Below, piece by piece: positions 8,501 through 34,775 of a stretch of DNA of 64,000 bases (its first letter is position 1; every line of letters starts with the position of its first letter). The notes beneath the pieces were generated by a model that was given only the letters and a program-made list of their open reading frames with translations, searched no databases and was not told the origin of the DNA. Made by a program: the position numbers and the translations under genes. Source of the DNA: Thalia democratica (lineage: Eukaryota); the NCBI GenBank assembly GCA_965202585.1, contig OZ241826.1:70804001-70868000 (forward strand), given 5' to 3'.

Positions 8501-8782
8501 AACTGCAAAATTATTCTCAGCTGCCCCAGCTGAACCGAAACTCGTTCGCGTCGCCCGTTCCATTTGCCCCTTCGATGAACAATTTGCAGCACGACCTAAT
8601 GGGCAATCCTCTACTTCAGTCGACTTCTCAAATGAACCACGCGTTGCTGAATCAAGTTACTGATAACTTGAGCCCATTGACTGCTCTTGAAAATCTCTCC
8701 AAAATACATGATCCAGTGGTTAGAACATATTAGATATTTACACAATGTTTTGATACAACTTAGAATTTTTTTTGTTAAAATT

Positions 8783-8818
<36 letters not shown>

Positions 8819-10943
8819 ATTATTATTATTAAAGTTTGATGCATTTTGCTTCATTTTACAAAGAAAAAGAATGTTTAAAAAGCTTTTATTTTACTTTAGG
8901 CCTATTTGGATGAGATAAGTGAGCTGTTTTTAAATGGAGCAAGGCCAGTTTACAGTGTTTTCACAGAAAGCCTAATAGGAAAAACCTTCTACGTGTTCAA
9001 GGTATTTTTTATGGGTAAAACATATACTCCAACACCTGCACATTATTCTGAAGATTTGATGGAGGCAAAAACGAATGCTGCAAAATATGTTATGAATGAA
9101 ACTGGTTTGCAAAATTTTTGCTAATTTATCTATCACATAATAAGTCACAAAGACTGTTTGATTAAGCTTAACAATTAATTTTATGATTAAACAAAGGTTT
9201 TATTAGTTTCCTATGAGATATATGTATATATTTCTACAATTTGAATTTAATATCTGCAGTTATTAGATTGAGGGCATAGTTAATATTTGTTAAAATTTCA
9301 ACAGATCCTTGGCTATGGAAACAGATATCGACACTTTTAGGAAATGGCAATGTAAATAGTTTGGTTCAGCGCAACAACTTGAGTTTTCAACGAAACCACC
9401 TGTCAAGTTTGAATGGTAGAACAGCCCAGAACGGTATATTGAATGGCAACGACGACTTTTTAAGCACTGCACTCAAGCAAAATCTTCAGAACAAGCTCAA
9501 CAACCAGCTTGATCAGGATGCGTCCAGTAGCAATGGGGTCTTCAACACAAACTCTCCACTTTGGAACTCACCCGTTGTTCAATCGTCAAAGGTAAGTTAT
9601 TGTTGAGCTACTTTAAAAATTGTACGGTTAAAGTTATAAATTTAATTATTTAATTATACCACAAGTTTGTTTTGTTGTTTGTAAATGTATTAACATTAAG
9701 TAGTTGAAAAAACAGACATTAAGTTAAGTAACTACATTTTCAAGAGTAAGCCATTTTGATTATTTATTTTTAACTGCAAAGTTCATGGTAAAATGAAGTT
9801 AATTTTAAAGTATTTAGATCTATATAGTTACTTCATTTGAATGAATTAGTTTTAATCTGTAAGACATCAGGTCTTTAAAGCGGTTAAATAGAAATAGTCA
9901 ATTATTTTGAAAGTGTTTAATTCATGTAATGTGTAGTTAGTTTATTAATGTAATTGTTGTAATTTCAAAACCAGAAAGTAATGTTATTTGATAGTCTGAA
10001 AAGGTTAACAATAAACAGTTTTTCATTGCTAACATTTAATGTCTGATTAGCTTTTAAATAAAGTATAATTCTATAACATATATTAAGTTATTAGCCATGT
10101 GGAAATTTACCTCAACATTGTTATGTTTTAAGTATATACCTAAGTACTGTCATTAGTGGTTATGAGTTTCGTTAAGCAAAAAAAGTCACAAGCACGTTTA
10201 TTTATTTTATTTCAACAGCTATTGTCGAGTTTAGCAGTGAGCGCGCAGCCGGAAATCCCAACAAGAAACACTTTGAACAACGGGGCGTTAATTGGAGGTG
10301 GAGACTCTTTTCTGTCGTCCAGCAATGACAAAAACAAACAGGTGGGAGTGATTTCACCACCTAACAAGGCGGTTTCTTCGAACAGTGTCCTCAATTCTAA
10401 CACGGATAACTTTTATCATTCTTTGTTGAATGATGACAATAAGTTGTTGGAAGATTTCAGAAGTGTATCTCTAGCTCAAGTATGTTTTGTATTAGCTTTT
10501 AGGTATATTAAGAAGTGTTGTAGTTTTAGATAATGTTTTGTAAACTTAAGCCTGAAACGTACAAACATATTTACAAAACTGAAAAAGAATTAGTAATTTT
10601 ATATAAGCTTAATCTAAATAATAAAAAGATTAGCCTAAAAGATATTTGATTACAAGTTTTAGACTTAATATTTGTTTAGCTAGTTAATTTTGTCTACTAC
10701 ATAGTTTTTAGTTCTAAGAAAAATACCAAAAAAATCTTTTAAAACATTACAATGCACAAGCAGGATACAAAAGACTTTGAAGGCATGAGCGGTGCGAACG
10801 GTTTGAACAGTTTGTACAACTCGTACCCAGTCGCAGCTAGCGGAGACAGCAGGGCTCAGGATTCTAGCCAGAACGTCGGTTCAAGCGGGTTCATGCCCCT
10901 CCACGACATTCCCAGCAGCCAGAATAAAGACATTTTTTCTTAG
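5539..10943 (+). CDS. A1CF/RBM46/RBM47-family RNA-binding protein (3 RRMs, Q/N-rich linker, dsRBD-like domain, N/S-rich tail), 13 coding exons, about 815-816 aa
   Basis: Exons 5539-5626, 5836-5975, 6129-6304, 6450-6562, 6932-7071, 7310-7501, 7604-7724, 7901-8094, 8368-8718, 8900-9104, 9305-9591, 10219-10479, 10761(or 10764)-10943. All introns are GT-AG, phases are compatible, total 2451 nt = 817 codons. Family motifs: [129 protein letters not shown]. Exon 10 (YVFKVF...[12 protein letters not shown]) is dsRBD-like. Orthology within the family cannot be resolved by eye. Confidence 0.92.
8787..8831. repeat. (TAT)n microsatellite in intron 9 of the RRM gene
   Basis: Directly visible tandem TAT units. 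Confidence 0.95.
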
Positions 10944-18242: not shown

Positions 18243-20479
18243 TTACAACAAGTAAGCTCTGATCACCACGAAGCTCAACAAAATATTCCTCAAGCTAGGG
18301 TCGAGGCTGCTAGCAAAGCTGCACGTCACACCGTCACCGGCGAAACCCGGCAAGCACTTGCAGGTGAACTCAGCATCGGCTGACCGCTCGCACTCGGCAT
18401 TTTCAGAGCATTCCAACCCGGCAAGCTGGCACTGGTGAGCATCTGTGCAAGCTGGCAGCTTGCATTCTACCACCCTCGAAAGTTCTTCCTTGCAGTCGCC
18501 CCTCGCGCACATTCTCGTTTCGGTTCTTTTTCCGGCGCCGCAAATTCCCACGCACTTGCCGAGTTTCCAGCCGGTGTAGGCAGGAGCATCTGTGTTCAAC
18601 TTCAAAGTTAATAAAAGAGCAAATAGTTTCACGCTCTAGAAATATTGAAAAAAAGACTGATTTTGTAGTTTTTACTTTTTTTAGTAAATCTGTTCCGTTA
18701 CATATAAATATCTTCGACTTATTATTTACAGGGTGTTTCGACTAATTAACAAAAAATATTAAACAATTGCAACCAAAAATCACCTAGTGAGTTTTTTTAA
18801 TAAATATTAGTTAAAACAACGGGTTTTGTTTATTGATAGTTGTTCACCTATGTTCACCGTATTTTTACGAAGTTTGTGGGTCTATTAGGTTTAGAAATTT
18901 AAGATAATAAAAAAAATTTGGACTATCTATGCTAAAATAAGTCAAAAAATACTGAAATAAGTAAATCATTTAGCTTATTAAACACATTTTAAATCTATAA
19001 AAAGTATTAAGAGAAAATCTTAAGTTTATGAATTTTTGCAGACTTTTTTTTCTATAAGGGTTTTTTAATTTCAATGCTAACAACCACTGACAATAAATGG
19101 AGTGTGTCAATGTTTTTAACGAATACAAAACATATTGTACACACTTAAAAGGGATAAATAACAAACTGACCACTAGAATTGTTGGCAACCGGAGCCGGCC
19201 CATCTTCAATCCTCGTGCAGTTTACGCCGTCCCCTTTATACTCGACCAAACAAACGCACTTGTGTTCACCATCACTCATCTCGCATGCGGCGTGCGGCGA
19301 ACAATGCAGAGACTTGCAAATGTCGTCGCCGGTCGGGCAAGGCTGCGACCTGCAAACCGCGATCCGGTGCAAGTCCTCGCTGCAGATCCCACCCAGACAC
19401 TCCCTCGTGTCCTGCCTGGTTCCTTCTCCGCACGTCACGCTGCAACTTCCGATCTTCCAGTCTCCGTACAAGCCCTTGGCGATGCACTTCATGTCGAGCT
19501 CGTCGAAATTTCCGTCTTTTCCGCACACGCTCATGTCCGAGCCGCTACGCTGCTCATACCCGTGCGAGCAGAACAAGCTGAAAATTTCCCCCACTTTGAA
19601 CTTGCCGCCGGGAGGTAAATTTTTCGTGTAGGTGTTGGGGGGCAGCTTTGGTAAGTCGCACTCCGTTATCGTCGTTTTGATCCAGTCCACGTAGAAGGAA
19701 ATCCGCGTCCACACTTCGGGCGTCGCCTGGTTGCCGCAACCGTCCAGCCCGAAGCTCACCACTCCCCTGAGAACGTCGACTCCCCTGCTGTCGTCGCGAC
19801 AGACCAGGGGACCGCCAGAGTCGCCGCGGCACACCCCGGTGGTAGCGTGAGGGTTGTTGGCGCAGATGTGCGAGTTCCTGATGTAGCTGCCGTAGGCGAA
19901 GAGGCAGTCGAACCGCTTCGACACGTACACAGTTCCCTCCTGAAGCGTACGGTCCGTGCTGTCGGCTTTCTCAGACTGGGTTTCCCCGAAGCCTGCGATC
20001 TCGCACGGCGTTCCCACCCCTGCCGTGTCACTGCTGCTCAGCGGTAGCGCCACCGGCTGGATAAACTTACTGGGTTTGAACTTATATTTGAGCTCTATAA
20101 CGACCAGATCGTTGTTGTTGGGATCATAGTCTGGATGCTCGTACTTGGCTCTGGCAATGATGTTCTGCTCGTAGTTGAGAAATCTGGACGTCGGGTACCC
20201 GGCGTATACGTGGATGTTGTTGGCCGGGTGGTCGACGGTGCAGTGCGTTGCCGAGGCAACCCACTTGTCCCCGATGACGACGCAGCCGCAAATGAAGACT
20301 TCCTTCTGCGACTTTATCACGGCCAACGAGCAGTAGAAGTTCCATTTCCCTGGCGCCGCGTCATTGCCGCCGTATATTCTGCCTTCCAAGGTTTTGGCGT
20401 CAGAGTTGTCGTTAGCAAGCGCCAGAAGACTTAAGTTGAAAATTAGCAGTCCTACAAGTTTGTATTTATTTTTGACCAT
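18243..20479 (-). CDS. Protease P1: secreted S1A serine protease, SP-Trypsin-CCP-TSP1-EGF-TSP1-EGF-putative GPI signal, 551 aa
   Basis: Exon 1 20479-19171 (donor AGT G|gtcagt), exon 2 18589-18243 (acceptor cacag|AT), phase-1 intron, 1656 nt. LEGR|IYGG, ATHC, NNDL, GDSGGP (triad intact). CCP CDLP...FC...VC...KC; TSP1 WKIGSCSVTCGEGTRQDTREC; EGF CSPHAAC...CVCLVEYKGDGVNC; tail SFASSLDPSLRNILLSFVVIRAYLL. Confidence 0.92.
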
Positions 20480-20483
20480 CGCC

Positions 20484-20528
20484 CGTATTATACTAAATCG
20501 TATTATACTAAATCGTATTATACTAAAT
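20484..20528. repeat. 15-bp tandem repeat x3 immediately upstream of the P1 start codon
   Basis: CGTATTATACTAAAT repeated three times exactly. Confidence 0.95.
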
Positions 20529-21386
20529 CGCTTTTAGTTTTATTAGATTTCAACGACTTAGCTTAAAAATTTCGTTACTTAGTAACAGAAAAACAACTTT
20601 ATATTTATGCATCAAGTCGTTTTAATAAATTAGGTGTAGATAAAAAGCAAGTTTTTATACTTGACGATTATTTTCATTCGATTTATTTTTAAGAAAATTG
20701 GGTAACTAAATTTCCCACTAAGTAGCAACAAGTTAAGCTTACAAGTTTATGATTTTACTAAAATATAACATTTATATATTTTTACTTTAATTTTTGTTAT
20801 ATTTTATGTTTTTGTAGTATTTTTTTATGTTTTATACAACTTTTAATGTGTTTTTTTAGAAAAAATAGTTTAAAGAAAAATCTTGTCAAATATTTTTCAA
20901 ATAAATTCCAAGCACATAGTTTCAAATACTAATAACAAAATTAATCTATATTATTTTCCTGGACAAGACGTTAAAAGATACCCGTGTAATTTAATAATGG
21001 TCGTTTTAAAGTTGGTTGAAAAACTGTATAATTAAACTTCATTGTATAACATAAGTATATTCTAAAACAGAAATAAATTTGTTCTTATTAATACTATTAT
21101 TGTTTTTTTTTTATTAAAAGCATAAATTTTATAGTATTTATCTTTATATTTTCTTTTATAAAAACAAATTGTACAGTAATCTTCCTTTATTGTACCAACA
21201 TATGTTTCTCTGTGTTAACGAATCAACACACTTCAACTGGGTTGTGAATGGAAAGAAATCTCTTTACCTATATTTTAAACCTATATTTTTGAACAGTTAT
21301 ATTTTCTTTTATAAATGTTAAGTTCATTTATTGTAGAATACACTTCTTTAAAACTCTTTAAAATGTTACAATAGTTTATTTATCTA

Positions 21387-21875
21387 TTCAAATGTAAGAA
21401 TATTTTTACTGTTTAAGTAAATTTATTAATAAAAATAAAAATTACCTTTTTAGCACAAATTACTGATAAAAATTTGAGTAAAAATATTTCAGCGTATTAC
21501 TTTCTTTAAAGAGGTTGTAACTTATAATTCGAGTATTCACACCTTTGCTATTAATATTGTTTATCTCCTTTTATAGCTTAATTAAAAGTTATATACATTT
21601 TTTAGTTCTTATGTTACTAAACAAGATTTATAGTACATTCTTAAACACGTTCAATTAATTTTAGTTTAGTTTTCTTTTCTTTTATTTCGTTTAATTGATT
21701 GTTTTATGACTAAAGATTTAAATACTTAAGTGATAAAAAAACTATGTGTAATAGCTCGTAAGTAACTTTATAAGCATGTGGTGTACGACTCGATAACCGA
21801 AAGGTTCCTTTGTACACCAGATCCTTAGACCAAACTTTTTGAGCGCTTTTTTTATCGTTCAACAAAACAATATTA
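21387..21875 (+). repeat. Dispersed repeat family D, right copy of the inverted pair
   Basis: Aligns by eye along its whole length to the reverse complement of 16616-17113. Shorter copies lie at about 59190-59320 (-) and 63125-63250 (+), with a fragment near 20957. Confidence 0.85.
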
Positions 21876-22195
21876 CATTTTTAGCTTTGGAGCAAAACAC
21901 TTTAAATTAAAAAAGTATAGTTGACATAATTGATTAACTAGATCAAATCTTTCATACATAAAAAAAAAATTGATTAAAAAAAGATTACAACTAAAAAGTT
22001 GTTAGATGATAGTTTAAAAGATAAAGTTAAAAAAAATTGCTACAACTTTGTTACGTGAATTATATAAAATAAATGAAAACAAAAACTTGATACCACACTA
22101 AATAATTTATTTTTTATAAGTTTATTATAGTTATTGTATTTAGCATTTGTAGAGTATTTAGCAGCTTTAAGCTTTTTTTATAGTCATTTTAGGCT

Positions 22196-23302
22196 TTACA
22201 AAACTTCATATGTAGACATACATTTAAGAGTAATGTAAACCACAGTTTGCAAAACTGCCATTCTTATTACCATTTCTAAAGAACAAGCCGCTGAAGATGT
22301 TTTAGGTGACTCATTTTTAGGCAACGTAGATTCAGTGACAGATTTTTTTGCATGAGTACTGGTAGTCTCAGAATTTTTAGCATGAGTGCTGGTAGTCTCA
22401 GAATTTTTAGTAGAGGTTGTTGTAGGTATTTCTGTTTTTTTAGTAACGGGGGTTTTAGACGCAGTAGAAGGATTTTTGGTACTTTCACCCTTCAAGTCAA
22501 CTGAAAATATGTTTTTTATCCATTCCTTGTACCAAGAGACTCTCGCAAAGACGTCCGCGACGTCAGTCAAGCCGCACTCGTCAGCGCCGAAGCTCGATAT
22601 CCCCCTCAACACGTACTGCTCCCGGGAAGCATCGTAGCAAGCCATCGGACCTCCGGAGTCTCCCAAGCAGATCCCGATCGGCGCGTTGGGCTCGTTGGCG
22701 CAAAGTTGCGAGTCTTCAACATCAGCAAAACTGTTAAAGCACTCTTCCTTGCTCACAATGTGCATCACCGCCTCCTGCTGATTTTTGTCTTCCGGCTCGT
22801 CAAAGTCCGTGTCACCGAACCCGATGACGTCACATTTCGATCCGACCGCGACGAGATCGTTTTTGCCCGTTGGCAGCAAGATGGGTTTGACCGAATCGTC
22901 GAACTTCAAACTTTCTTGCAGTTGGAGCAACACGATGTCGTGAATGAGCGTGTCGTCGTTGTACTGGGGGTGCTCGTACTTTTCTTGCGCTTTCACGCTC
23001 TGAGTGTAGCTCGATAATTTCGAGCTGGCGAACCCGGCGTCCACCGTGATTCCGCTGGCGGGCTCGCCGACAGTGCAATGGGATGCGGACAGGATCCAGT
23101 TTTCGGCAATTATTGAGCCTCCGCACACAAAGTAAGAGTCGTCAGTTTCTGATCCTTCAATGCTCAGATGAACGTAGAAAGGCCATTTACCCGGTGCCGC
23201 ATCGCTGCCTCCGTATATTCTGCCTTGAATGGAAACAGCGTGGGAACGTTTACACAGTTGAAAAGAAATTGAAACAAAAAGTAAGCATGTGAACAAACGC
23301 AT
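22196..23302 (-). CDS. Protease P2: intronless S1A serine protease with Thr/Ser/Lys-rich mucin-like stalk and C-terminal hydrophobic (GPI-like) tail, 368 aa
   Basis: Single ORF. Signal peptide, IQGR|IYGG, ASHC, IHDI, GDSGGP. T/S/K-rich stalk with KNSETTSTHA x2. Ends TSSAACSLEMVIRMAVLQTVVYITLKCMSTYEVL. Confidence 0.9.
   Translation of the reverse strand: MRLFTCLLFVSISFQLCKRSHAVSIQGRIYGGSDAAPGKWPFYVHLSIEGSETDDSYFVCGGSIIAENWILSASHCTVGEPASGITVDAGFASSKLSSYTQSVKAQEKYEHPQYNDDTLIHDIVLLQLQESLKFDDSVKPILLPTGKNDLVAVGSKCDVIGFGDTDFDEPEDKNQQEAVMHIVSKEECFNSFADVEDSQLCANEPNAPIGICLGDSGGPMACYDASREQYVLRGISSFGADECGLTDVADVFARVSWYKEWIKNIFSVDLKGESTKNPSTASKTPVTKKTEIPTTTSTKNSETTSTHAKNSETTSTHAKKSVTESTLPKNESPKTSSAACSLEMVIRMAVLQTVVYITLKCMSTYEVL
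22351..22410 (-). repeat. 30-bp coding tandem repeat x2 in the P2 stalk (KNSETTSTHA)
   Basis: Units 22351-22380 and 22381-22410 are 29/30 identical. Confidence 0.95.
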
Positions 23303-25074
23303 GCTTTTTTAAAAATTTTATTTTCCCTTTGTCTCTTATTTTGATAAAGCTAAGACTTATTTTTCCAAGCTGTTACTATGGAGTTATACTAAATTATTCT
23401 TAACAATATTGATAAACGAAAACATTATAATGTTATGCTAAAACATTATGCTAATTTACAGTAAAACGACGTATTTAGTTTTTATGCATTACTTGTTATT
23501 GGAGACTATTGAGTAATAATTACTACTTTCATGTTTTATATTTAACATTATTTTAATTGTGTTTTTATACTTAAAAATATCTTTTTTTACATTTCGTCTT
23601 TAATTAGCATAAGTAAAGAAATTAAAGTTTAATCTTTTCTTTTCGAATTTTTAGTTGTAAAATGCTTACTACTTAGAAAAACTTACATTTTTATATAATA
23701 CTTCAGTTTTGAAAACGTATACAAAATCAAACTTGCGCAAATAACAGTTTTATTTAAACTTTATTCTAATCATGCAAGAAAAATGTTACTAGAACTTAAT
23801 TTCTAAGAAGAATTAAATTAATGCTTTGTTTTTTATTTATCAGAAGTCTAAAAAATATTTTTGTCTTTAAAATATGTTTTTAAAAGCTTACAAACAAAAA
23901 CTTTACTTTGATAGTAGCAAAATTGGTCCATTAAAAAAAAATTCTCAATTTAAAGACAAGTACTAAACTTTTATCATAACAAAAATCACAAAAAACGAAA
24001 AATTTATAACAAAATATAGTTAGCTTTTCTAATACAAGTAAAAAACTCTAAACAACATTAAATTATACTCAGCAAACTCAAATTCATTATTCTTCAACAT
24101 CAGTCAGCAACAATCCTTATCTCCTACTATCTTTGTGTTTAAAATTTTCACAATATTTTACTGCTTTATGAGTAAAGCGCTTAATAAAATTCAATCTACG
24201 ATACACTTTTCAGCGTACAAAGTTGTATTTATTTCAAAAGTACTTTTAATTAAAGGCAGTGAACTAGTTCAAATGTTGTTGAGAACCAAAAACAGTGATA
24301 CCGCGTTCTATTAGCTTGTCTAAAAACCTAGATACCGTTAACAGACTGTCTGCTTCATCGCAGCGAAATTGGTTTTAGCTGCATAAAGTTATCCTTGTAG
24401 AACTTAACAAAAGAGCTCTTTAAAGTATCTATTACATTGATGATGTTTTTTGACTCACTCATAAACAAAACTATTTGAACACAAGATCAATTAATGAAGT
24501 ATATAATTCATGAGTATATTGAATTAATCAAGACTTATTCAGTAAATATCTTTTAAAAAACTTAGTCCAAAAACTTTATATTAAATTTACATAAGTAATG
24601 TATGAAAGTTATTGTATGTTGAAATTTATTTTGACGCGTTTTCAATAGAAATAAGTTAAACTGCTATACAGAGCTAGCAGTGTCAGCCAAACAGCCTGCT
24701 GTTCTAACTGCTTTACTTTACGAAAGAATCGATTTTTGAACATATCTTAAAATTCGTTACTTATTAAATACTATTACTGATACTATACACTGCAATACTT
24801 TACTAGATTTTGTTCTAATTAAAAAACAATGTGATAAATTTTAAACTTGTAATAAGTTTAGCAATAATGTATTATACATTTTTATTAACTAAGGTAATTT
24901 AAGACGTATCATTATTCTTCTTAAAATGAAAATATTTTATTATTTTATAATATCAGGTTCAAACTTATTATTTATCGTAATAACGTACACAGTTGCTAAG
25001 TAACAATAATTGAAATTTTAACACAAAGTTAAGTTTGATCGTTTTTAGGTTCATATTTTAACTTTCAGAAAAGC

Positions 25075-27935
25075 ATGCGTGATTTAAAATACAAAATTCT
25101 AGGACTGTTAATCCTGAGCTCCGGCCTTTTGGTCGCTGCAAACGAGAACTCAAAGAAGGACGACATCCAAGGAAGAATATACGGAGGCAGCGACGTGAGG
25201 CCAGGTGATTTCCCTTTTTTCGGCTCGTTGGCCATAAAAGACTTAAAGTCCATAAACGAAGTCAAAATGTGCGGTTGCACCATTCTCGGCAGAAAGTGGG
25301 TCGCCTCGGTCACTTCATGCACCAAAGACTATCCCGCTGAACAAATTTACGTGTACGCAGGGTATCCCACAACAACAATTACGAACTACAATCAGAACAT
25401 CAGAGCCAGAGCGAAGTACGAGCATCCCGACTACGAACCCAACCTCAACGACATCGTTCTCGTAGAGCTCAAAAAAGATTTGGTCTACAGCAACCTGGTG
25501 CTGCCCATCCAGTTGCCTCTGAACGACAGAGACGTGGCTCCCGTCAAAACCGAGTGCGCCATCATGGGATATGGAGAGACCGAGGACGACCCGATCACGA
25601 CGGTCCACAGGCCGATGAAGCAGGGAACCGTGTACGTCGTCCCGAAGGTGGACTGCCAGTTCACGTACGGCAACATCATCAAAGACTCGCACGTCTGCGC
25701 CAACCACCCGACCCAGATCACCGGAATCTGCAAGGGGGACGCCGGTTCGCCGCTGGCCTGCTTCGACGACTCCAAGCAGGACTGGGTGCTGAGAGGGGTG
25801 GCCAGCTTCGGAACTTCGGTGTGCGGCGTCGCCTCCGCCCCCGAGGTCTTCACGAGGATCTCGCAATACGTCAAGTGGATCAGGGAAAAGGTGATAGAGT
25901 GCAACCTGCCACCGAAGCTGCCTCCGAACGTCTTCACGAACGCGACGCACCACCACGAAGGAAACTTCAAGGTGGGCGAGAAGATCCAGCTGTTCTGCGA
26001 GGAAGGGTATGAACTGAAGAAGGGAGCAACCGAGTCAACGTGCCAGATGGGCGGCGTCTTCGACAAAATCGACACGGAATGTAGGAAAAAGTCCATATAC
26101 GGCGAGTGGAAGATCGGAGAGTGCAGCGTGACGTGCGGAGAAGGAACCAGGATGGACACGAGGGAGTGCCTGGAAGGGGTTTGCCCTAAACACCTGTACG
26201 TGGTTTCCCCCTGCTGGCTGAAGTCTTGCTCCGACGGCAACAACGTTTGCGAGGACCTCAAGTGCTCCCATTTTGCATCGTGCGAGAAGTTCTTCGACGA
26301 GGAAAACTTCAACTGTCACTGCATACCCGGGTTCATCGGCAACGGCAAAACTTGCACGAGGAAGCCTGTGGAAGAAGAAGAGGAACCGGAAACAGAAGGT
26401 GAGTGTAAAAGAAATTAATTTATTTAAATTGTAAAGAAGAGCTAATACCAGGAGTAATATTCTGGAATTTTTATTAAAAACCTAAAAAGAAACAAGTTTC
26501 AAGATCCATTTGCGTTAAAGTTATTAAAAAAATATTAAAATCGGTCATAACAAAGTTTAGGTAAGGCATCAAAAAAACCTGAAAAAGATTTACTTTATTT
26601 AATTAAACCGAAAAATATACTATGCTGCACAAACTGCATAGTGGTATATATTTATTATGTTATTATACAAACAAACTGTAAAAGGTTATTTGACAATGTT
26701 ATTTTATTAACAACTTTATTATACTACACACCGTTTAAAATAATTCTAAGTAAACTTAATAATTTTTTAATTAACAAAAGTATCCCAGTAAAACAAAATG
26801 ACAAGGTTAAATAAAACAAACCAAAATTCCGAGTTTCCAACAAGAAAGAATTTAACAATTTTTTTTTAATAAGTAAGTTTTTTCTTTTTACAACATAAAG
26901 CTTGTAATAGCTTGTAATAATTTTACTTAAAAACAGTATTTTTCAACAAGAAAATTTAATTAGAGTTCATTTGATTGCTCTTACTTAAAATGTACAGTCA
27001 TGTTTTAAAGTTAGACAATACTAAGATTGTGATAAAACGTAACTTGGTATACAAATAAAAGTATTGATTAGCTAGGCCTGTTTATGTTTTAATGCATAAA
27101 TGTAGATGGTAAAACAAAAATTAATAATAAAACTAACAAAAAAGTCCAATTAAATTAGTAATTAAAGTTTTGTAAGTTTTTAGGCGTAGGGATCAACCAG
27201 AACTATTGTTATTTAAAATTTGAAATTCCTTTTTTCTAAAAATTGTCAAAATGAATGGAAAATTTTACGAAAATAAATACTTGTAGTTGAATTATGTTCT
27301 CAATTATTTATTATGCTTTTGTACATGTTATACTTATTTTTTTATGTAGTTTTTACTTTTTACCTACAATAATTCATTATTAGTAATAAAACGATTAGTA
27401 TAGAAAAGAAAGCTAGAATAAGATATATTTAATCTAATATAAGGTTTTATCACAAAATGATTTATAATGAAATAAAAACAACTCGCATCTAAACTACAGC
27501 CTTACTTAAAAAAAAACTTTGTCTAAAGTAAACACCATTTTTCCAATCCTAAATCAATTTACTACACTTAAACTTTCAGAAGTACCCGTATACACGGACT
27601 GGACACTTGGCAGGTGCAGGGGCAGGTGCGGAACCGGAAAGAGAACGGACACTAGACAGTGCGTGAAAGGCAACTGCGTGGAGGCGATCTTCAGGCTGGT
27701 CGACTGCAGGCTGCCCAATCCGTGCCCGGAAAACAACCACGACGAGTGCAAGAAGCACTCACTGGACTGCCACAAGGAGGCCAGGTGCGTGAAGCTGGAG
27801 AAGGAGCTGAGTTTCGTGTGCGAGTGCGTTGACGGGTTTTTTGGCAACGGGAAAATTTGCGGTTTGAACGGCGGCCCGAAGCTTGGTGTGAACAAATTTG
27901 TGTTTGTTTTGGTGGCAGCTTACTTTTTGTTCTAA
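25075..27935 (+). CDS. Protease homolog P3 (catalytically inactive): SP-Trypsin(H57S,S195A)-CCP-TSP1-EGF-TSP1-EGF-putative GPI signal, 559 aa
   Basis: Exon 1 25075-26398 (GAA G|gtgagt), exon 2 27580-27935 (tttcag|AA), 1680 nt in frame. VTSC replaces AAHC, GDAGSP replaces GDSGGP, LNDI is retained. Tail CGLNGGPKLGVNKFVFVLVAAYFLF. Confidence 0.92.
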
Positions 27936-29033
27936 AAAATGCTGCGTCTGACTGGAGATGAAATATATAAAGAAATAAATAAAGCGTAATTAAAAAAAAC
28001 TATTTGGAATTTTTGTTCAAAACTTATATTAAGATTTAAAACATTCAAAAGAGATAAAAAAATTATCGTATTGAAGTTAATAAAAAAGTTCTAATAAAAG
28101 AAATTTTAAACCAAGGCTTAACTTTAAAGCAATATGAGTTTTATAACTTGATTAAAATTCAAAAATGAAGTTTTAAATTATTTCATAGACGCCAGAGGGC
28201 AAAAACGGTTACGGCTGATAATAAATAAAAAAACCAAAAACTTATGTGACTCAGAAACTTAGTTTTGTTAGTCTAACTGGTTACGTTTGTTATATATGTT
28301 ACCTATTTTTTTTAATACTAAAAAAGAAAAAAAAAAATTCAAGCTGTATTTGACTATTTTTACTGTAAACTACATATATTTAGTCTACCAAGTTTGGCAA
28401 AGGTTAAAAATACTAATATACTTAGAGTACACCTTAATCTAAAACATAGCTGTTGGTTAAATAATTTCATCAAAAAAGTTAAAGTTTAGAAAATTAGAAT
28501 ACATAATCTTCGTGATTCAGATAAAATAGCTTTGATTAAAAAGAATTAATTTAGCCAGAATTAAAAATGATTGAACATTTGTATTAATTCTATACTCTAC
28601 CCAAGTACTTAGTTTTGGTTTGAAAAACGATGACAAAGTGTGTTTAGCTTAACTTGATCACTTTTCTTCCTCATTATAATTTTTTAATGTGATTTATGTC
28701 TAAAAAAACAAACATTTTTTAATAACAATCGTTAAAGCAAACTCTTATCTAAATCTTAAATTTTAAGCTGTTATTTCTTTACATTAGAAATAGATACTTT
28801 GTGTTAAGAAAGATGGTACTAAAGTGCTATTATATATATTCTCTAAACTAAAGTCTACTTTAATTCTTGTTGTTCTATATGATTTTACAATCACAAAAAA
28901 AAAAAAGAAATAAATAAAAAAAACATATTCAATTCTATGTAATTTTTATAATTTGTTGCTAAGTATTACAAAGCTGTGTTGAAGAAAACAAGCTAGTAAA
29001 TTTTTTTTCAAAGTTACATGCCTAAAATTACAA

Positions 29034-31025
29034 ATGCATTTTTTCTTCTCCTTATGTTTGCTATCTCTGAACTTCAACACCTTCGCGCTTGCAAAAAAAA
29101 TCAATCTCACCGGAAGAATATTCAACGGGAAGGACGCGCCACCGGGAAAATGGCCTTTTTACAGCCTGCTGGTCATCAGGGCGGTCGAGGGCGCCGACGA
29201 AAGAAGTGCTTGCGGGTGCGTTGTCATCGCAACGAAGTGGATCGTGTCCGCGGCCCACTGCACCGTCGGCCACCCGGCTGACACTCTGTTCGTCCACGCA
29301 GGCTTCCCCACATCGATGATTCTGAATTACGAACAGAGATCGGGAGTGAAGGCAAAACACGAGCATCCGGAATTCAACTCCTTTTACGTTCTGAACGACA
29401 TCGTGCTGCTAGAACTGAAAAACGAATTAAAATATGGTCCTTTAGTGCGGCCGATTTCGCTGCCGGAGAACAAGGTTCCGAAGGTTTCCGAGGGAAAAGA
29501 GTGCAAGATCGTGGGTTTCGGCAAGACGGGAGGTGCGGAGACGCTGCAGGAAAGAAAGCTTCAGGAGGGAGACGTGACTGTCATATCCAAGTTCGACTGC
29601 CTGTTCGCCTACGGTCACATCATCAGGGACTCAAACATCTGTGCCAACCACCCGACCGCGGCCACCGGGTCGTGCAAAGGGGATTCGGGAGGACCGCTGG
29701 CCTGCCTCGATGACAGCAGAAACGAATATGTTCTCAGAGGAGTGACAAGCTTCGGTGCCACCCATTGCGGTGACAATACAACTCCGGAAGTTTGGTCGAG
29801 AGTTACTTGGTACCTGGATTGGATCAAAGAAAAAATGCGTGAAACTAATGGTTTGTATGTTTAACTTTAGTATGCTAGATCAGTTCAGGACTAAGACGCT
29901 TATTTTTGGTAGATAGTTTTATAGTTTTTAATTTATAAATGTTAATCTTTAAGATGTTTTCTTGAGTATAGAAGATTTAATTAAAAAATGAACTAGCAGT
30001 TTTGCTATAACTATTAAATAACTGTTGATAAAACAATATTTATGGTCTTTATAACTTATTTTATTTTTTTTTTGCAATGATCCCCGCTTGATCTAATTAA
30101 ACTGTTATTCTAGTATTAAGTATACTATAAAGTAAGTATTAAAATAAAAATTCACATTAGATGATGGAAAAAATTAACAAGATTTAAAAAATATGGAAAG
30201 TTATAGTTTTTGCTTTTTTATTTGTCGAAATGATTTAGTACAATTTAGCCTTTTTGTTAAGTCTTTGCACTCAAATTTATCTTTTTATTTTGAATTTTTT
30301 AATTATGTAAAAGTCTAGTTGGGTTTAATTTTGACTCTACTTTAAAGGAAATACTAAAAAACATTTTTTAGTCTAGCAGCAACCTACCTTAAAAACTATC
30401 CGTTTTAAAAACTTGAATAAGTTTTGTCTACTTATAGGAGTTAGTAATTTTAGTAAAAAGAAGCAGAGCTTTTAAAATCCACATGAGAACATAGTTTATT
30501 TACGAGCATATAAGTTCTGATCCATTGTTAAATTTTTCTTATTTAAAAAACAAAAGTTAGAGCAGTACAATTTTATTTTAAATGAAGAATTTTTCTCAAA
30601 TTTTTTCTTAAAACATATACAAACTTAAGCTAACAAAAGTAAGTTGAAATGTAAACAAAATATACTTTTTAGTTGATGGTTCATACACGGAATGGAGCCT
30701 GGGTAAATGTGATGGTGACTGCGGAACTGGATCAAGAACAGACATGAGAGAGTGCGTAGGAAAAAATTGCAATAAAGAACTTTCACGGACCGTCAATTGC
30801 ACTTTGCCGAACCCTTGCGAGCAAGGATGCAATAAGCTGAGCTTGGATTGTTCCAAGCATGCGAGTTGCATTAAATCGACAAAAAGTCTAGAATTTATTT
30901 GCGAGTGCTTAGATGGCTTTACTGGAAATGGTACCGTGTGTGTTTCTAACGGAAGTTTTAGAGTTAAAACGAATCTGGTAGTTTTTGGACTGGTAATTAC
31001 AATTAAAAGTTACCTTAAAGTTTAG
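29034..31025 (+). CDS. Protease P4: SP-Trypsin-TSP1-EGF-putative GPI signal, 389 aa
   Basis: Exon 1 29034-29850 (AAT G|gtttgt), exon 2 30673-31025 (tttag|TT GAT GGT TCA TAC ACG GAA TGG), 1170 nt. LTGR|IFNG, AAHC, LNDI, GDSGGP. Tail CVSNGSFRVKTNLVVFGLVITIKSYLKV. Start codon slightly uncertain (out-of-frame ATG at 29018). Confidence 0.9.
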
Positions 31026-31764
31026 AAACAGACAATTAGGTGCAAAGTTTATTAAAACAAGCGTACGTAGAATAAAAATAAATGAGGAAGAAAAAATATT
31101 TAATTATTAACTTGTATCTTTTTTTTATCTGAAAATTTAAAAGTTTAGCTACTCACAATTATTTTTGGTTTTGTTTATACTAAATGAAGTTTATATAATA
31201 TTCTAACAATCATTTTGTGCTAATTAAGATAAAACTAGCTAAGTATTAGAAAAAGTGAATGTTCCATTAAAAACTACCTTTTTGAAAAGTATTAGTTGTT
31301 ATATTCAATACACTTTTACGATATTTTTTGGTTAGATAGTTATAATAAGTTTGTAACTTTTTTCATAAGATAGATGATCAACAGAAGTTCTTAAAACTTT
31401 GTAATAAGTAAAATACGTTGTTAGTATTCATTTTCTTTTGTATAAGACTTAATAATGCTTTTGCTTATATATAGATATTTCAGCTTAATCTGTTTACCAT
31501 TTTATAATTATAAATTTGCATTCAAAAATTCAAAAAAACGAAGTTAGTTAATAAATTTTAATTAATTTTTAAAAGTTTTCTTTCCATTAACAACCCAGTT
31601 GAATTTGTTGATTCGTTAACACACAGAAACATATGTTGGTACAATAAAGGAAGATTACTGTATAATTGTTTTTATTAATAAATTTTAGTAGTTTTGTTGC
31701 TAAGTAGATTGATAAATGAAAATAAGGAACAAAATCGAACAAATATGTTTGACCGTCATACCAT

Positions 31765-34700
31765 ATGAAGTATTTTTCTAAAGCAGAGTTTGTAGGACTT
31801 TTGCTGCTTAGCGTAAGTTTTTTAACATTGGCAGACCAAAATTTGAAAATAGACCAAATCAAAGGCAAGATCTTTGGCGGGAAAAACGCAGAGCCGGGAA
31901 AATGGCCGTTTTATTCTTTCTTAGCCGTAAAATCATTTTCAAACCCGTTCTCAATATCTTCATGCGGCAGCGTCATTATCGGGAAAAAGTGGGTCGTTTC
32001 AGCGACACACTGCACGTTCGGTTCTCCCGCCAAGAACATTTACGTTTACGCGGGATATCCAACGTCAGAGTTTCTAAATTACGAGCAGAGTTCTGTCGCT
32101 CGAGCCAAGTACGAATACCCAAACTACAACGTCAGAACCGTTCGAAACGACATTGTTCTTGTTGAGCTGAAAAAAAACCTAGTGTTTAATGAGTTTGTTC
32201 AGGCCATAAAACTGCCTGAAAATAACGAACGAGTTCCAGCTGGCAGTGAGTGCGCTATCATTGGCTACGGAAAAACTGAAGAAGACATCTCAAAAAAGGA
32301 AAGAATTCTGAAAGTGGGACTTATTTATATTATCAGTCAAAGGCAGTGTTCTTCAATTTACGGCAACATTATTAGAGAATCCAACATCTGCGCCAACGAT
32401 CCGACTGCGTCAGTCGGAGCTTGCAAAGGAGACTCCGGCGGGCCTCTCGCTTGTTTTGACGAAGATAAAAACGAATATGTCCTCAGAGGAGTGACGAGCT
32501 TCGGAAGTCCAAACTGCGGCGACAGGGACACCCCGGAAGTGTGGACCAGGATAAGTTGGTACCTGGGTTGGATAAAACAACTGATGACAGAGTGCAACTT
32601 TCCCGCTGAGCTGCCCGTCAACTCTTACACCCTGTCGACGCAAACAAAGTTCAAAGTGGGCGAGGTATTGTCCGTTTTTTGCAAACCCGGCTTCATGCAG
32701 TCCGGAACCGCGCAGGTCGAGTGCCGGAAAAACGGATACTTTGACGAAATTGACACCAGATGCGTCGAGCAAGGGTTTTACGGCGACTGGAAGATCGGGA
32801 CGTGCAGCGTCACCTGCGCCACCGGAACCAGAATGGACGCTAGAGAGTGCGTGGCTGGAATTTGCGACGAGCCGCTTGTGAGGGTTTCCGCTTGCCGGCT
32901 GCAACCCTGCCCGGAAGGCGACGACGTTTGCGCTTCACTGAGCTGCTCGAAAAACGCGGTGTGCGAGAAAATTGGTAAGGTGTACGAGTGTGAGTGCCTG
33001 CCCGGTTTTATGGGAAATGGTTTTAGTTGCGCGAGTGAAGAGTTAGGGACTCTTGTTCGTTCAAACTTGAAAATTGGTTTGTAGTTTTATGTTCAATTTA
33101 TAAATTTTTGTTTACTTATTTATACCAAGGTTGCCTAAGGTAAAAAAAAAGAATTCCATGTTTTCTAAATTTCTTCAAAGTTTTAAAAAGTACAATTTTT
33201 TTTGTATATTTACTATAAATCTAAGTTTAAGGTGAAAACCGTCTTAAATAGTATAAAAATATTGAAAAAATACTGTAATGCAACTTTTAAAATGTTTTAC
33301 AATAAATAATTTTCTTAATGAAAAAAAAAATTTTTTGATACAATGATATATTTTTTGTATCTAATCAAAGTTTCCTCTTTTTGAAAATGTTAAAAATTCA
33401 AAGTTTTTTATTTATTATTATTTTTTCAAATTCCAAGTTTTTTAACCTAAACTGTCAAATTCTAGGTTTTTTGACGATCCTGTTATATAAAAGTTTTTCA
33501 ACTTTTATTAAAACTTAGCCATACAGTCATTTGTTTATTAAATAAAGTTTTCTTGTGATTGTCGAAAACCTTATTAAAGCAACAAATTTTTGAAATTAAT
33601 CTTTGAAATTTATGATTACATATAGAAATTAGTTTTTTAAGACATATTTTTTTAGTTTAAAACCGTATTATTGGTAGCTAATTTTTATGATCAACATTAA
33701 AATGTTACCTAGTTTTTGTTGAAAAGGTTTTCGAATTTCTTTTAATTTCGTTTATAATCAAATTTAGTGATCTACCGGATCCGGCCGGATTAAGCTTTTT
33801 TCACTACTATCTGGATCCTAATATAAAAAATAAATCCAAAACCAACCGGGTCTCGATTTAAAAAAATAGATCCGGATCTGATGTTGGCCGGATTTTGCGG
33901 ATCCTCCGGTAGATCACTAGCTTTTGCATTTGGTTTCAAAAAATATATTTGGATCCAGTTTTAAAAAAAGCAATAGTTATTTTTATTGTTCAAAAAATTT
34001 TTATAAAGAAGCAACCACACTAAATTTATAACAAAACGTTCCCTAACAAAACACAAGTAAACTATCGCGTTTAAAAAACATCACAGTATCAATACTTTAC
34101 AAAATTGTAATTGATGTATGTTGTAGGTGTAAAGAAGACTTTTTGTCTAATTTTTTCAACTATTTAAATGCAATAGTTGCCAAACGTTTGCTTCTCTAGT
34201 TTAAACAATTTTAGAAACTTAGTTTTGCTTTTAGTAAGTTATTGTACCTTGAGGTGCAAAATTTTATAAAATAATCAAGCAAAGTAATAGTTTAGAAAAC
34301 AGCTAAAGTAGGTATACAAATATAATAAATAACTATTCTTATTAACTTTATTAATAGATGTATTTTTAAGACTTTTCTGTATTTGTTTAATCTTTGTTTC
34401 AAACTATCAACTTAAATCTTTTGTATCACTTTTTCAGATGGTCCTTTCTATTCTGAGTGGAAACTTGGAAAATGTGAAGGAGTTTGCGGTGTCGGGCGTA
34501 GAAACGACACAAGAAAATGCGCAAGAGGCGACTGCAAAGAACAACTTGAGAGAACAACAAACTGCATTTTGCCCAATCAATGCGAAGATTGTGAAGACCT
34601 GAACTGCTCTGAAAACTCCAGATGTGCCAAAATTAGCCCTGAACTGCCGTATCAGTGTGTATGTTCGCCTGGTTTCTATGGAAACGGGACTGTTTGCAGC

Positions 34701-34775
34701 TCTGCAAACATCCTAATATGTGGCATGAAGCAGTACTTGATCATTATGATAATGGTGTTTTACTGCTACTTATAA
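31765..34775 (+). CDS. Protease P5: SP-Trypsin-CCP-TSP1-EGF-TSP1-EGF-putative GPI signal, 549 aa
   Basis: Exon 1 31765-33076 (ATT G|gtttgt), exon 2 34438-34775 (tttcag|AT GGT CCT TTC TAT TCT GAG TGG), 1650 nt. IKGK|IFGG, ATHC, RNDI, GDSGGP. Tail CSSANILICGMKQYLIIMIMVFYCYL. Confidence 0.92.
33765..33919. mobile_element. 155-bp MITE of the TAGTGAT (hAT-like) family in the P5 intron
   Basis: Perfect 15-bp TIR TAGTGATCTACCGGA / TCCGGTAGATCACTA and internal ATCCGG motifs as in 2863-4651. No TSD recognisable. Confidence 0.75.

Follow-up and report, generated by a model that had tools for sequence, protein, structure and literature searches.

The five trypsin-fold genes described here, from the pelagic tunicate Thalia democratica, probably represent a lineage-restricted family of modular S1A proteases that are displayed on stalks and are most likely GPI-tethered. 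This reading is the best explanation of the genes, domains, relatives, splice pattern and promoter motif that were observed; anchoring, specificity and tissue are inferred. The window, which is the whole 64-kb stretch of DNA that was analysed, contains the five paralogs between positions 18243 and 34775, with A and B on the minus strand and C, D and E on the plus strand. They were confirmed by their open reading frames and by matches to Pfam Trypsin (PF00089) in all five genes (E 1e-38 to 1e-49, profile positions 1-220). No sixth copy was found by tblastn within the window. Genes A, C and E share the order signal peptide, short propeptide, protease, Sushi, TSR and EGF, followed in the second exon by TSR, EGF and a hydrophobic tail. 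In D, the protease is followed in the second exon by TSR, EGF and the tail, and B is a single exon with a protease, a Ser/Thr-rich stalk and a tail. The gene models and their exons are as follows.

20479..19171 + 18589..18243, minus strand: gene A, 551 aa, with a GT-AG phase-1 intron
19171..20479, minus strand: A exon 1, signal peptide, 12-residue propeptide, protease with triad, Sushi, TSR1, EGF1 (Pfam matches Trypsin 1e-45, Sushi, TSP_1 and EGF_3; GT donor after 19171)
18243..18589, minus strand: A exon 2, TSR2, EGF2 (EGF_3 3e-10), ASS site, 13-residue hydrophobic tail
23302..22196, minus strand: gene B, 368 aa, single exon
22196..23302, minus strand: B, whole gene, protease with triad, 69-residue Ser/Thr-rich stalk, SSA site, weakly hydrophobic tail
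25075..26398 + 27580..27935, plus strand: gene C, 559 aa, with a GT-AG phase-1 intron
25075..26398, plus strand: C exon 1, predicted pseudoprotease (His57 to Ser, Ser195 to Ala), Sushi, TSR1, EGF1
27580..27935, plus strand: C exon 2, TSR2, EGF2, NGG site, 12-residue hydrophobic tail
29034..29850 + 30673..31025, plus strand: gene D, 389 aa, with a GT-AG phase-1 intron
29034..29850, plus strand: D exon 1, signal peptide, 8-residue propeptide, protease with triad as the only module
30673..31025, plus strand: D exon 2, TSR, EGF, SNG/NGS site, hydrophobic tail
31765..33076 + 34438..34775, plus strand: gene E, 549 aa, with a GT-AG phase-1 intron
31765..33076, plus strand: E exon 1, protease with triad, Sushi, TSR1, EGF1
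34438..34775, plus strand: E exon 2, TSR2, EGF2, SSA site, hydrophobic tail

The original prediction had described five paralogs, two on the minus and three on the plus strand, of which three carry CCP-TSP1-EGF-TSP1-EGF, one TSP1-EGF and one a mucin stalk. Both points were borne out by the reading frames, Pfam matches and gene models, and the signal peptide, short propeptide, small-residue site and hydrophobic C-terminus that it had assigned to the proteins are all present as described.

In all five protease domains, a Cys-free propeptide of 6-12 residues ends in R/K ahead of I-(Y/F)-(G/N)-G, the activation site gives an Ile16-type N-terminus, and the G-D-S/A-G motif (Asp194) is present. The catalytic triad of His57, Asp102 and Ser195 is complete in A, B, D and E (4/5). 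In gene C, position 57 is Ser and position 195 is Ala, and its orthologs P0005 and P0003 have lost the corresponding active-site residues (Ser or Thr at the former position, Ala or Thr at the latter). Judged from its sequence, C is a pseudoprotease that is predicted to be catalytically dead; it is nevertheless conserved (dN/dS 0.31). The S1 pocket is formed by Gly189 and Glu or Asp226 (Gly189/Glu226 in gene A), which predicts a broad specificity with acceptance of basic residues; cross-activation within the cluster would therefore be possible. Pockets of the brachyurin and cathepsin G type combine a small residue at 189 with an acidic one at 226. The salp pocket would be of a similar type, but brachyurin (crab collagenase) and cathepsin G are single-domain, soluble enzymes. 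The closest structures to the protease domain are generic S1A enzymes, e.g., uPA, tryptase and prostasin.

Between the protease and the anchor signal lie 69-270 residues. Besides Trypsin, exon 1 of A, C and E matches Pfam Sushi, TSP_1 and EGF_3, and every exon 2 contains an EGF_3 match and a TSR-like unit with 36-47% identity to the exon-1 TSR-EGF unit (exon 2 of D is 53% identical to that of C). The B stalk has a Ser+Thr content of 43% and a 10-residue unit that is present as two repeats. The Sushi, TSR and EGF parts of the AF2 models are confident, and the closest solved structures to the stalk are the TSRs of properdin and thrombospondin, the CCPs of complement receptors and the EGFs of NELL. 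No CUB match was found in the five genes or their relatives.

The Thalia junctions in the window rest on GT-AG, the reading frame and cross-species transcripts. In a rival reading, the exon-2 units would be separate small genes or dead fragments that were joined by a gene-model artefact. Such an artefact is hardly credible. The four introns of A, C, D and E are all GT-AG, in phase 1 and at the identical module boundary, which amounts to four independent in-frame junctions, and homologous exons are joined in the transcripts of relatives. The metatranscriptome contig L002 corresponds to the metagenome scaffold L003 minus a 166-nt GT-AG phase-1 intron at the homologous boundary, and a transcript contig of a relative (L006) aligned to window positions 32044-33076 and then 34439-34762, that is, to exons 1 and 2 of gene E. 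Splicing of the exon-2 modules to the protease exon, on which the original prediction depended, is thereby borne out in relatives. Cluster members recovered from RNA reach full length (565 and 491 aa), and those from DNA end at exon 1 (450 and 312-323 aa); the full-length forms of 491-567 aa in metatranscriptomes likewise argue against an artefact. In a marine metatranscriptome run, 19-21% of the sampled words from both cluster halves were found.

GPI anchoring was assessed by our own rule-of-thumb reading of the tails (small-residue triplet, spacer, hydrophobic run). Nine distinct tails were read: those of the five Thalia genes, P0007, P0008, P0011 and P0129 with its variant P0275. In each, a small-residue triplet precedes a spacer of about 4-11 residues, after which come a hydrophobic stretch of 9-19 residues and a final 0-7. 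The stretch measures 9-14 in the family tails except in B, where it is 19, and 10-14 in A, C, D and E. By this heuristic, the tails of all five genes look like candidate GPI signals, with a weak score for B, whose tail contains charged residues. It is rather improbable that the proteins are secreted matrix or mucus proteases without a membrane anchor, in which the tail is removed or non-functional or soluble forms arise via intron retention. The exon-1 frame continues 2-9 codons into the intron and then reaches a stop, so that unspliced RNA would give a soluble protein, but in introns of about 23% GC, a stop codon shortly past the donor would be expected by chance. Secretion would also suit the tails of B and P0008, whose hydrophobicity is only moderate. 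Against this, the small residues and hydrophobic end persist in the family at 35-50% identity, kept in kind while the tail sequence itself is not conserved.

The likely tethered family can be compared with known membrane-bound proteases. Prostasin (PRSS8) and testisin (PRSS21) resemble the salp proteins in their signal peptide, short propeptide, N-terminal S1A domain, hydrophobic C-terminus (a candidate GPI signal in the salp family) and lack of a cytoplasmic tail. In these vertebrate enzymes, however, no stalk of Sushi, TSR or EGF modules separates the anchor from the protease; the background given for them in the original prediction agrees with PMC11172050. The salp family shows neither orthology to PRSS8/PRSS21 nor their anchor signal right after the protease, as a 69-270-residue stalk intervenes, and it has no specific sequence affinity to them. 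Prostasin is among the structural matches of the protease. With respect to the type II transmembrane serine proteases (matriptase, hepsin, TMPRSS2, HAT), the salp family would be a topological mirror. It would share with them a catalytic domain at the far end of a modular surface stem, but type II enzymes have an N-terminal signal anchor, a stem ahead of the protease and a Cys122 interchain disulfide, whereas the salp proteins have a cleavable signal peptide, the protease first, a Cys-free propeptide and a predicted C-terminal anchor. Their activation site lies within 6-12 residues of the N-terminal hydrophobic region, and their modules are C-terminal to the protease.

The family appears to have a narrow range: a single clade (support 100/99) unites the five genes with 15 unnamed proteins from marine metagenomes or metatranscriptomes. 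A, C, D and E each have a 1:1 ortholog with 87-89% identity (P0012 in the case of D), with dN/dS values of 0.14, 0.31 (C) and 0.41 (E); B sits on a long branch, and none of the recovered sequences is its ortholog. One relative has a trefoil domain. No named protein with this architecture was found in libraries of 5.8 and 1.84 billion proteins, in the AlphaFold DB clusters or in the ESM Atlas. A named relative with a similar layout may be H2ZII6 (Peptidase S1, 920 aa), an AlphaFold DB match to query residues 30-536 with a TM of 0.33 that was compared by structural alignment alone. A stalk-only word search with P0008 residues 270-565 returned P0008 and P0007 alone, and a word search with the whole-family profile yielded generic trypsins and factor D-like proteins as its only named relatives. 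The best 150 matches of an exhaustive profile search were mostly multi-trypsin proteins. With a local stalk profile, the modules were found only in family members, the Sushi-repeat protein P0147 and P0016, an unrelated protease carrying three TSRs. In the ESM Atlas, feature-based and structure-based searches both yielded N-terminal-module proteases only, and a search of AlphaFold DB with the stalk model gave generic TSR, EGF and CCP matrix proteins, none of them a named peptidase. The match from a metagenome locus scan, a bacterial trypsin of 72% GC with RTX-like repeats, was rejected as unrelated. No literature on this architecture in tunicates or salps was found. In these searches, the domain order was confined to this narrow set of marine environmental sequences, and it matches no named family in any library searched, as had been proposed, with H2ZII6 compared by alignment only.

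The same comparisons bear on the very unlikely alternative of a complement-like surface immune cascade, in which targets would be bound by the Sushi and TSR modules, activation would pass from one member to another and the pseudoprotease would serve as regulator. Like the salp family, MASP, C1r, C1s and factor B have Sushi (CCP) beside an S1A domain; Sushi and TSR are hallmark complement modules, the closest solved matches of the stalk include properdin and complement receptors, and the R/K activation site and the predicted basic-accepting pocket are common to all members. However, those proteases are soluble and carry their modules before the protease; the salp order is opposite to that of MASP and C1r. 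Instead of the order CUB-EGF-CUB-CCP-CCP-protease, the genes have no CUB and a single Sushi after the protease. The family does not group with complement proteases: its nearest named proteins are generic S1A enzymes such as uPA, kallikrein, insect collagenase-like/brachyurin-like and fish factor D-like proteins (none is prostasin or testisin). Among named proteins, the profile search ranked a fish complement factor D-like protein first, with a match to the protease domain only. Neither a C3 nor a lectin partner is encoded close by within the window.

Four of the genes share a promoter element. The motif GTTRCTAAGTA has exactly four copies in the 64 kb, one upstream of each of A, C, D and E at a distance of 59-107 nt, and all are sense and promoter-proximal (4 exact matches vs 0.21 expected; 0/100 shuffles reach 4). 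B has no motif. The copies are listed below.

20574..20586, minus strand: 13-nt palindrome GTTACTAAGTAAC, whose 11-mer core begins 107 nt upstream of the A ATG
24992..25004, plus strand: GTTGCTAAGTAAC, 83 nt upstream of the C ATG
28955..28965, plus strand: GTTGCTAAGTA at D, 79 nt upstream of the D ATG, second half-site degenerate
31696..31706, plus strand: GTTGCTAAGTA at E, 69 nt upstream of the E ATG, second half-site degenerate

A blind search for exact 8-10-mers in at least four of the five upstream regions gave nothing above background; the motif was noticed by eye in its output and was afterwards tested separately. It is conserved across the relatives' contigs L001, L003-5 and L007-9: that of A is kept in the sister-species contig L001 at -86, that of C in L009 at -82 and that of E in L007 and L008 at -69. 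Among other candidate identities, HNF1 is presumably a poorer fit, with its TAAT core broken, and a C/EBP site was also considered. The published X-box consensus is GYTRYY N1-3 RRHRAC (PMC2375033). It is fitted in full by the motifs of A, C, their orthologs and the P0008 lineage, and in one half-site by those of D and E. By this consensus match only, the motif is a putative element like an RFX X-box, and A, C, D and E are probably co-regulated through it. For the site of action, given as epithelial, gamete or immune in the original prediction, this element is the one new hint. Expression perhaps takes place in a ciliated mucus-handling epithelium or in sperm.

The latter site would suit sperm-surface fertilisation proteases, in which the tethered enzyme and its adhesive stalk bind and cut the egg coat, an alternative that we regard as unlikely. 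Flagellar genes are also RFX-driven, which would accord with the X-box-like motif, the genes are a tandem expansion, and the dN/dS of E is fairly high (0.41). The nearest functional precedents are testisin, which is GPI-anchored, and ascidian acrosin, whose protease comes first and whose binding modules are C-terminal (PMC9265791); egg-coat roles have been proposed for both and for spermosin. Ascidian acrosin, in which the protease is followed by two CUB domains, and ovochymase (Halocynthia roretzi) resemble the salp family in being S1A enzymes of tunicates that begin with the protease and continue with binding modules (PMC9265791, with which the background given in the original prediction agrees). 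They differ in having CUB modules and, in ovochymase, multiple protease domains; a GPI signal has not been described for them, and their protease-then-CUB layout is absent from the five genes. A, C, D and E have 1:1 orthologs under purifying selection and not a fast turnover, and the trefoil domain of one relative also speaks against sperm. Trefoil domains are generally linked to mucus.

Under the preferred reading of a stalk-displayed, most likely GPI-tethered family, each protein would enter the secretory pathway through its cleavable signal peptide as a zymogen with a short Cys-free propeptide, and activation would come from cleavage between an Arg or Lys and the following I-(Y/F)-(G/N)-G. 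It would carry the catalytic domain at its free N-terminus, followed on the C-terminal side by a stalk composed of Sushi-TSR-EGF-TSR-EGF, of TSR-EGF or of a mucin-like segment. As the stalk most likely ends in a GPI-attachment signal, the enzyme would be held on the outer cell face at a stalk-defined distance, and because the modules come after the protease, no interchain disulfide would be needed for it to stay tethered after activation. C would probably act as a binder or regulator. A fuller picture, speculative and improbable in its entirety, is that of a mirror of the type II system, in which co-regulated GPI-tethered proteases and a dead regulator, RFX-driven and cross-activating, process the mucous feeding net or surface liquid in a ciliated mucus-transporting epithelium of the pelagic tunicate.

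Three layouts of membrane-anchored serine protease are known: type I enzymes, type II enzymes, whose modular stem precedes the protease, and GPI-anchored enzymes, which lack a stem. The salp family would add a fourth, with the protease first, a Sushi/TSR/EGF modular stem and a GPI-type anchor. Distal display of a catalytic domain on a stalk would thus be reachable from either polarity, in this case with no need for an interchain disulfide of the kind on which type II enzymes depend. With three stalk lengths, one predicted dead member and a shared promoter element, the genes would form a compact natural set for relating stalk length to the reach of a surface protease. To our knowledge, almost nothing is known about surface proteolysis in pelagic tunicates, and the family would provide a handle on it.

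Five coding blocks, GC-richer than the 24–30% GC background in the GC profile, mark the cluster. Six-frame ORFs and Pfam identified five S1A protease genes, and tblastn with the five models as queries found no sixth copy in the 64-kb window. The original prediction of a five-gene S1A cluster is thus borne out by ORFs, Pfam and gene models, with the following coding coordinates:

20479..19171, 18589..18243, minus strand: gene A, 551 aa
23302..22196, minus strand: gene B, 368 aa
25075..26398, 27580..27935, plus strand: gene C, 559 aa
29034..29850, 30673..31025, plus strand: gene D, 389 aa
31765..33076, 34438..34775, plus strand: gene E, 549 aa

There is one intron in each of A, C, D and E and none in B. 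All four introns are GT-AG, lie in phase 1 and are positioned directly ahead of the last TSR-EGF pair. The intron of E also holds, at 33760–33924, a 20-nt inverted repeat (90% complementary) around 125 nt rich in GGATCC and CCGG, which resembles a small insertion of the foldback or MITE type. The upstream neighbour of the cluster (6364–10533, plus strand) has several exons, some of RRM type, and a Gln/Asn-rich tail; read by eye, it resembles the hnRNP R/Q, A1CF and RBM46-47 group.

The proteins are built protease first. In A, C and E, exon 1 encodes a signal peptide, a 12-residue propeptide, the protease, Sushi, TSR and EGF, and exon 2 encodes TSR, EGF and a hydrophobic tail. In D, the protease is followed directly by the exon-2 TSR-EGF-tail, and B has no modules; instead, it carries a 69-residue stalk with 43% Ser+Thr and a 10-residue unit present twice. 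Pfam recognises three module types in exon 1 (Sushi, TSP_1 and EGF_3) but only EGF_3 in exon 2, whose TSR has diverged beyond its detection. The exon-2 and exon-1 TSR-EGF pairs nevertheless align column for column, with all Cys, Trp and Arg residues invariant and 36–47% identity. Across the TSR units of the five genes, an O-fucosylation-type motif, C-x-x-(S/T)-C-x-x-G, is retained in the first TSR (as CSVTCG.G), the second has lost its Ser/Thr, and both show Y-x-x-W, with one Trp, in place of W-x-x-W. AF2 models of the environmental relative P0008 reached a pLDDT of 74 at full length and 82.5 for the stalk alone, and the Sushi, TSR and EGF parts were folded confidently in both. The best solved matches of the stalk were the TSRs of properdin and thrombospondin-1, the CCPs of complement receptor and beta2-glycoprotein, and the EGFs of NELL; the protease domain was about 25–30% identical to ordinary S1A structures, with no special affinity. 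In P0129, from a JGI metatranscriptome of another species, a trefoil (P-type) domain (residues 392–432, Pfam E 1e-13) separates one TSR-EGF pair from the other; the stalk is therefore modular. On a 7.5-kb metagenome contig of a more distant member (L010, 5421–7277), the last TSR and EGF lie in different frames, which suggests an extra intron or a frameshift.

Within the window, the join of exon 1 to exon 2 is given by gene models, and its backing comes from transcripts of relatives. The 565-aa protein P0268 is encoded on the metatranscriptome contig L002, which is 100% identical over 1–1331 and 99.8% identical over 1330–1754 to the Tara metagenome scaffold L003, of which it skips 166 nt. The skipped segment starts with GT, ends with AG, has 23% GC and interrupts the homologous boundary in phase 1. 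The transcript contig L006, a relative of gene E with 74–76% nucleotide identity, aligns to 32044–33076 and then to 34439–34762 of the window, no more than one base off the modelled exon bounds of E. Finally, where one 90% cluster contains both kinds of sequence, its metatranscriptome proteins run to full length (565 and 491 aa) and its metagenome proteins end with the exon-1 ORF (450 and 312–323 aa). These three lines from relatives support the predicted joining of exon 2 to the protease exon. One marine metatranscriptome run contains 19–21% of sampled 31-mers from both cluster halves, which suggests that part of the cluster genes is transcribed in nature.

When A was compared with 5.8 billion clustered proteins, strong matches came solely from unnamed marine sequences (ENA, JGI and MERC); among named proteins, the best matches were generic (insect collagenase-like, uPA, trypsins), with E about 1e-22. 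P0129, P0134 and P0139 joined the family through a profile search run exhaustively on 1.84 billion representatives, in which the remainder of the best 150 matches were multi-trypsin proteins or plain trypsins. A word search with the family profile found no named member. In the ESM Atlas and the AlphaFold DB clusters, the only matches were proteases whose modules are N-terminal and matrix proteins that lack a protease. The architecture thus stands outside named families in the protein, ESM Atlas and AlphaFold DB searches, as had been proposed, with one possible exception, AlphaFold DB H2ZII6 (920 aa), aligned over query residues 30–536 with a TM of 0.33.

A maximum-likelihood tree of protease domains was built from the five genes, 15 environmental proteins and 13 outgroups. 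The five genes and the 15 environmental proteins form one clade (100/99 support), so the predicted lineage restriction holds; the relatives are all of Tara Oceans origin, as would suit an animal of the open sea. Each of A, C, D and E has a 1:1 ortholog (87–89% identity), and A, C and E have a second, more distant one; therefore, the paralogs are older than those species splits. Members with Sushi fall into a single subclade (99/99), B stands alone on a long branch, and exon 2 of D is nearest to that of C (53% identity). We infer an ancestral form of the type protease-TSR-EGF / TSR-EGF, after which Sushi was gained once, D lost the first TSR-EGF pair and B lost all modules.

His57, Asp102 and Ser195 are kept in A, B, D and E. 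In C (25075–27935), His57 is replaced by Ser and Ser195 by Ala, and its orthologs P0005 and P0003 show matching losses (residue 57 is Ser or Thr, residue 195 Ala or Thr). Measured against sister-species contigs, the dN/dS of exon 1 was 0.14 (A), 0.31 (C) and 0.41 (E). With this value, C is, as judged from its sequence, a conserved pseudoprotease. P0129 is catalytically dead as well; it and P0139, both in the other subclade, lost catalytic residues independently of C. All five proteins have Gly189 and an R/K activation site, and residue 226 is Glu in A, C, D and E and Asp in B. Pockets of this kind, as in crab collagenase and cathepsin G, give a broad specificity that includes basic residues. 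Such an S1 pocket would permit mutual activation among members. As a rival to the epithelial role preferred here, an immune cascade ranks second. Since the propeptides have no Cys and the protease has no Cys122, activation should free the propeptide; the activated enzyme would stay attached to its stalk via the main chain.

Nine distinct tails were compared (A–E and the environmental proteins P0007, P0008, P0011 and P0129, the last with its variant P0275) using our own heuristic. After the last EGF, there is a small-residue triplet, a spacer of about 4–11 residues and a hydrophobic run of 9–19 residues (9–14 in all except B, with 19), followed by 0–7 residues. The kind of design is conserved, but the sequence varies. 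The runs fall short of the length that a membrane-spanning helix with a cytoplasmic stop would need; they are best read as part of a GPI signal, and by this heuristic the family proteins are likely GPI-tethered. The weakest GPI-type tails are those of B and P0008.

An 11-mer, GTTRCTAAGTA, occurs in exactly four exact copies in the 64 kb against 0.21 expected, and none of 100 shuffles reached four:

20574–20586, minus strand: copy of A, GTTRCTAAGTA(AC)
24992–25004, plus strand: copy of C, GTTRCTAAGTA(AC)
28955–28965, plus strand: copy of D, GTTRCTAAGTA
31696–31706, plus strand: copy of E, GTTRCTAAGTA

Every copy is sense-oriented and lies 59–107 nt 5' of the start codon of one gene (A, C, D or E); no copy precedes B. 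The A and C copies extend to an inverted repeat of 13 nt, GTTRCTAAGTAAC. The motif is conserved in orthologs of A (at -86), C (-82) and E (-69), and in the P0008 lineage, whose protein is only ~40% identical, it is found at -65 with differing flanks. This is good evidence that A, C, D and E would be co-regulated via a common motif. In the stretch abutting the start codon of A (20480–20530, minus strand), a 15-nt unit, ACGATTTAGTATAAT, is present three times in tandem; these copies are missing from the sister-species contig L001. Published X-box consensus sequences are GTNRCC(0-3N)RGYAAC (PMC7077322), which the motif fits loosely, and GYTRYY N1-3 RRHRAC (PMC2375033), which the A and C copies fit fully and the D and E copies in one half-site. 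RFX is a candidate factor at the motif, which is only a lead towards use in ciliated cells or sperm. Use of the proteases at the sperm surface is the main rival to the epithelial reading.

Taken from sequence, the cluster represents a novel form of membrane-anchored serine protease, the anchor being predicted, with a polarity opposite to that of the type II enzymes. The best guess is that its proteins are displayed on an epithelial surface, possibly a ciliated, mucus-handling one.
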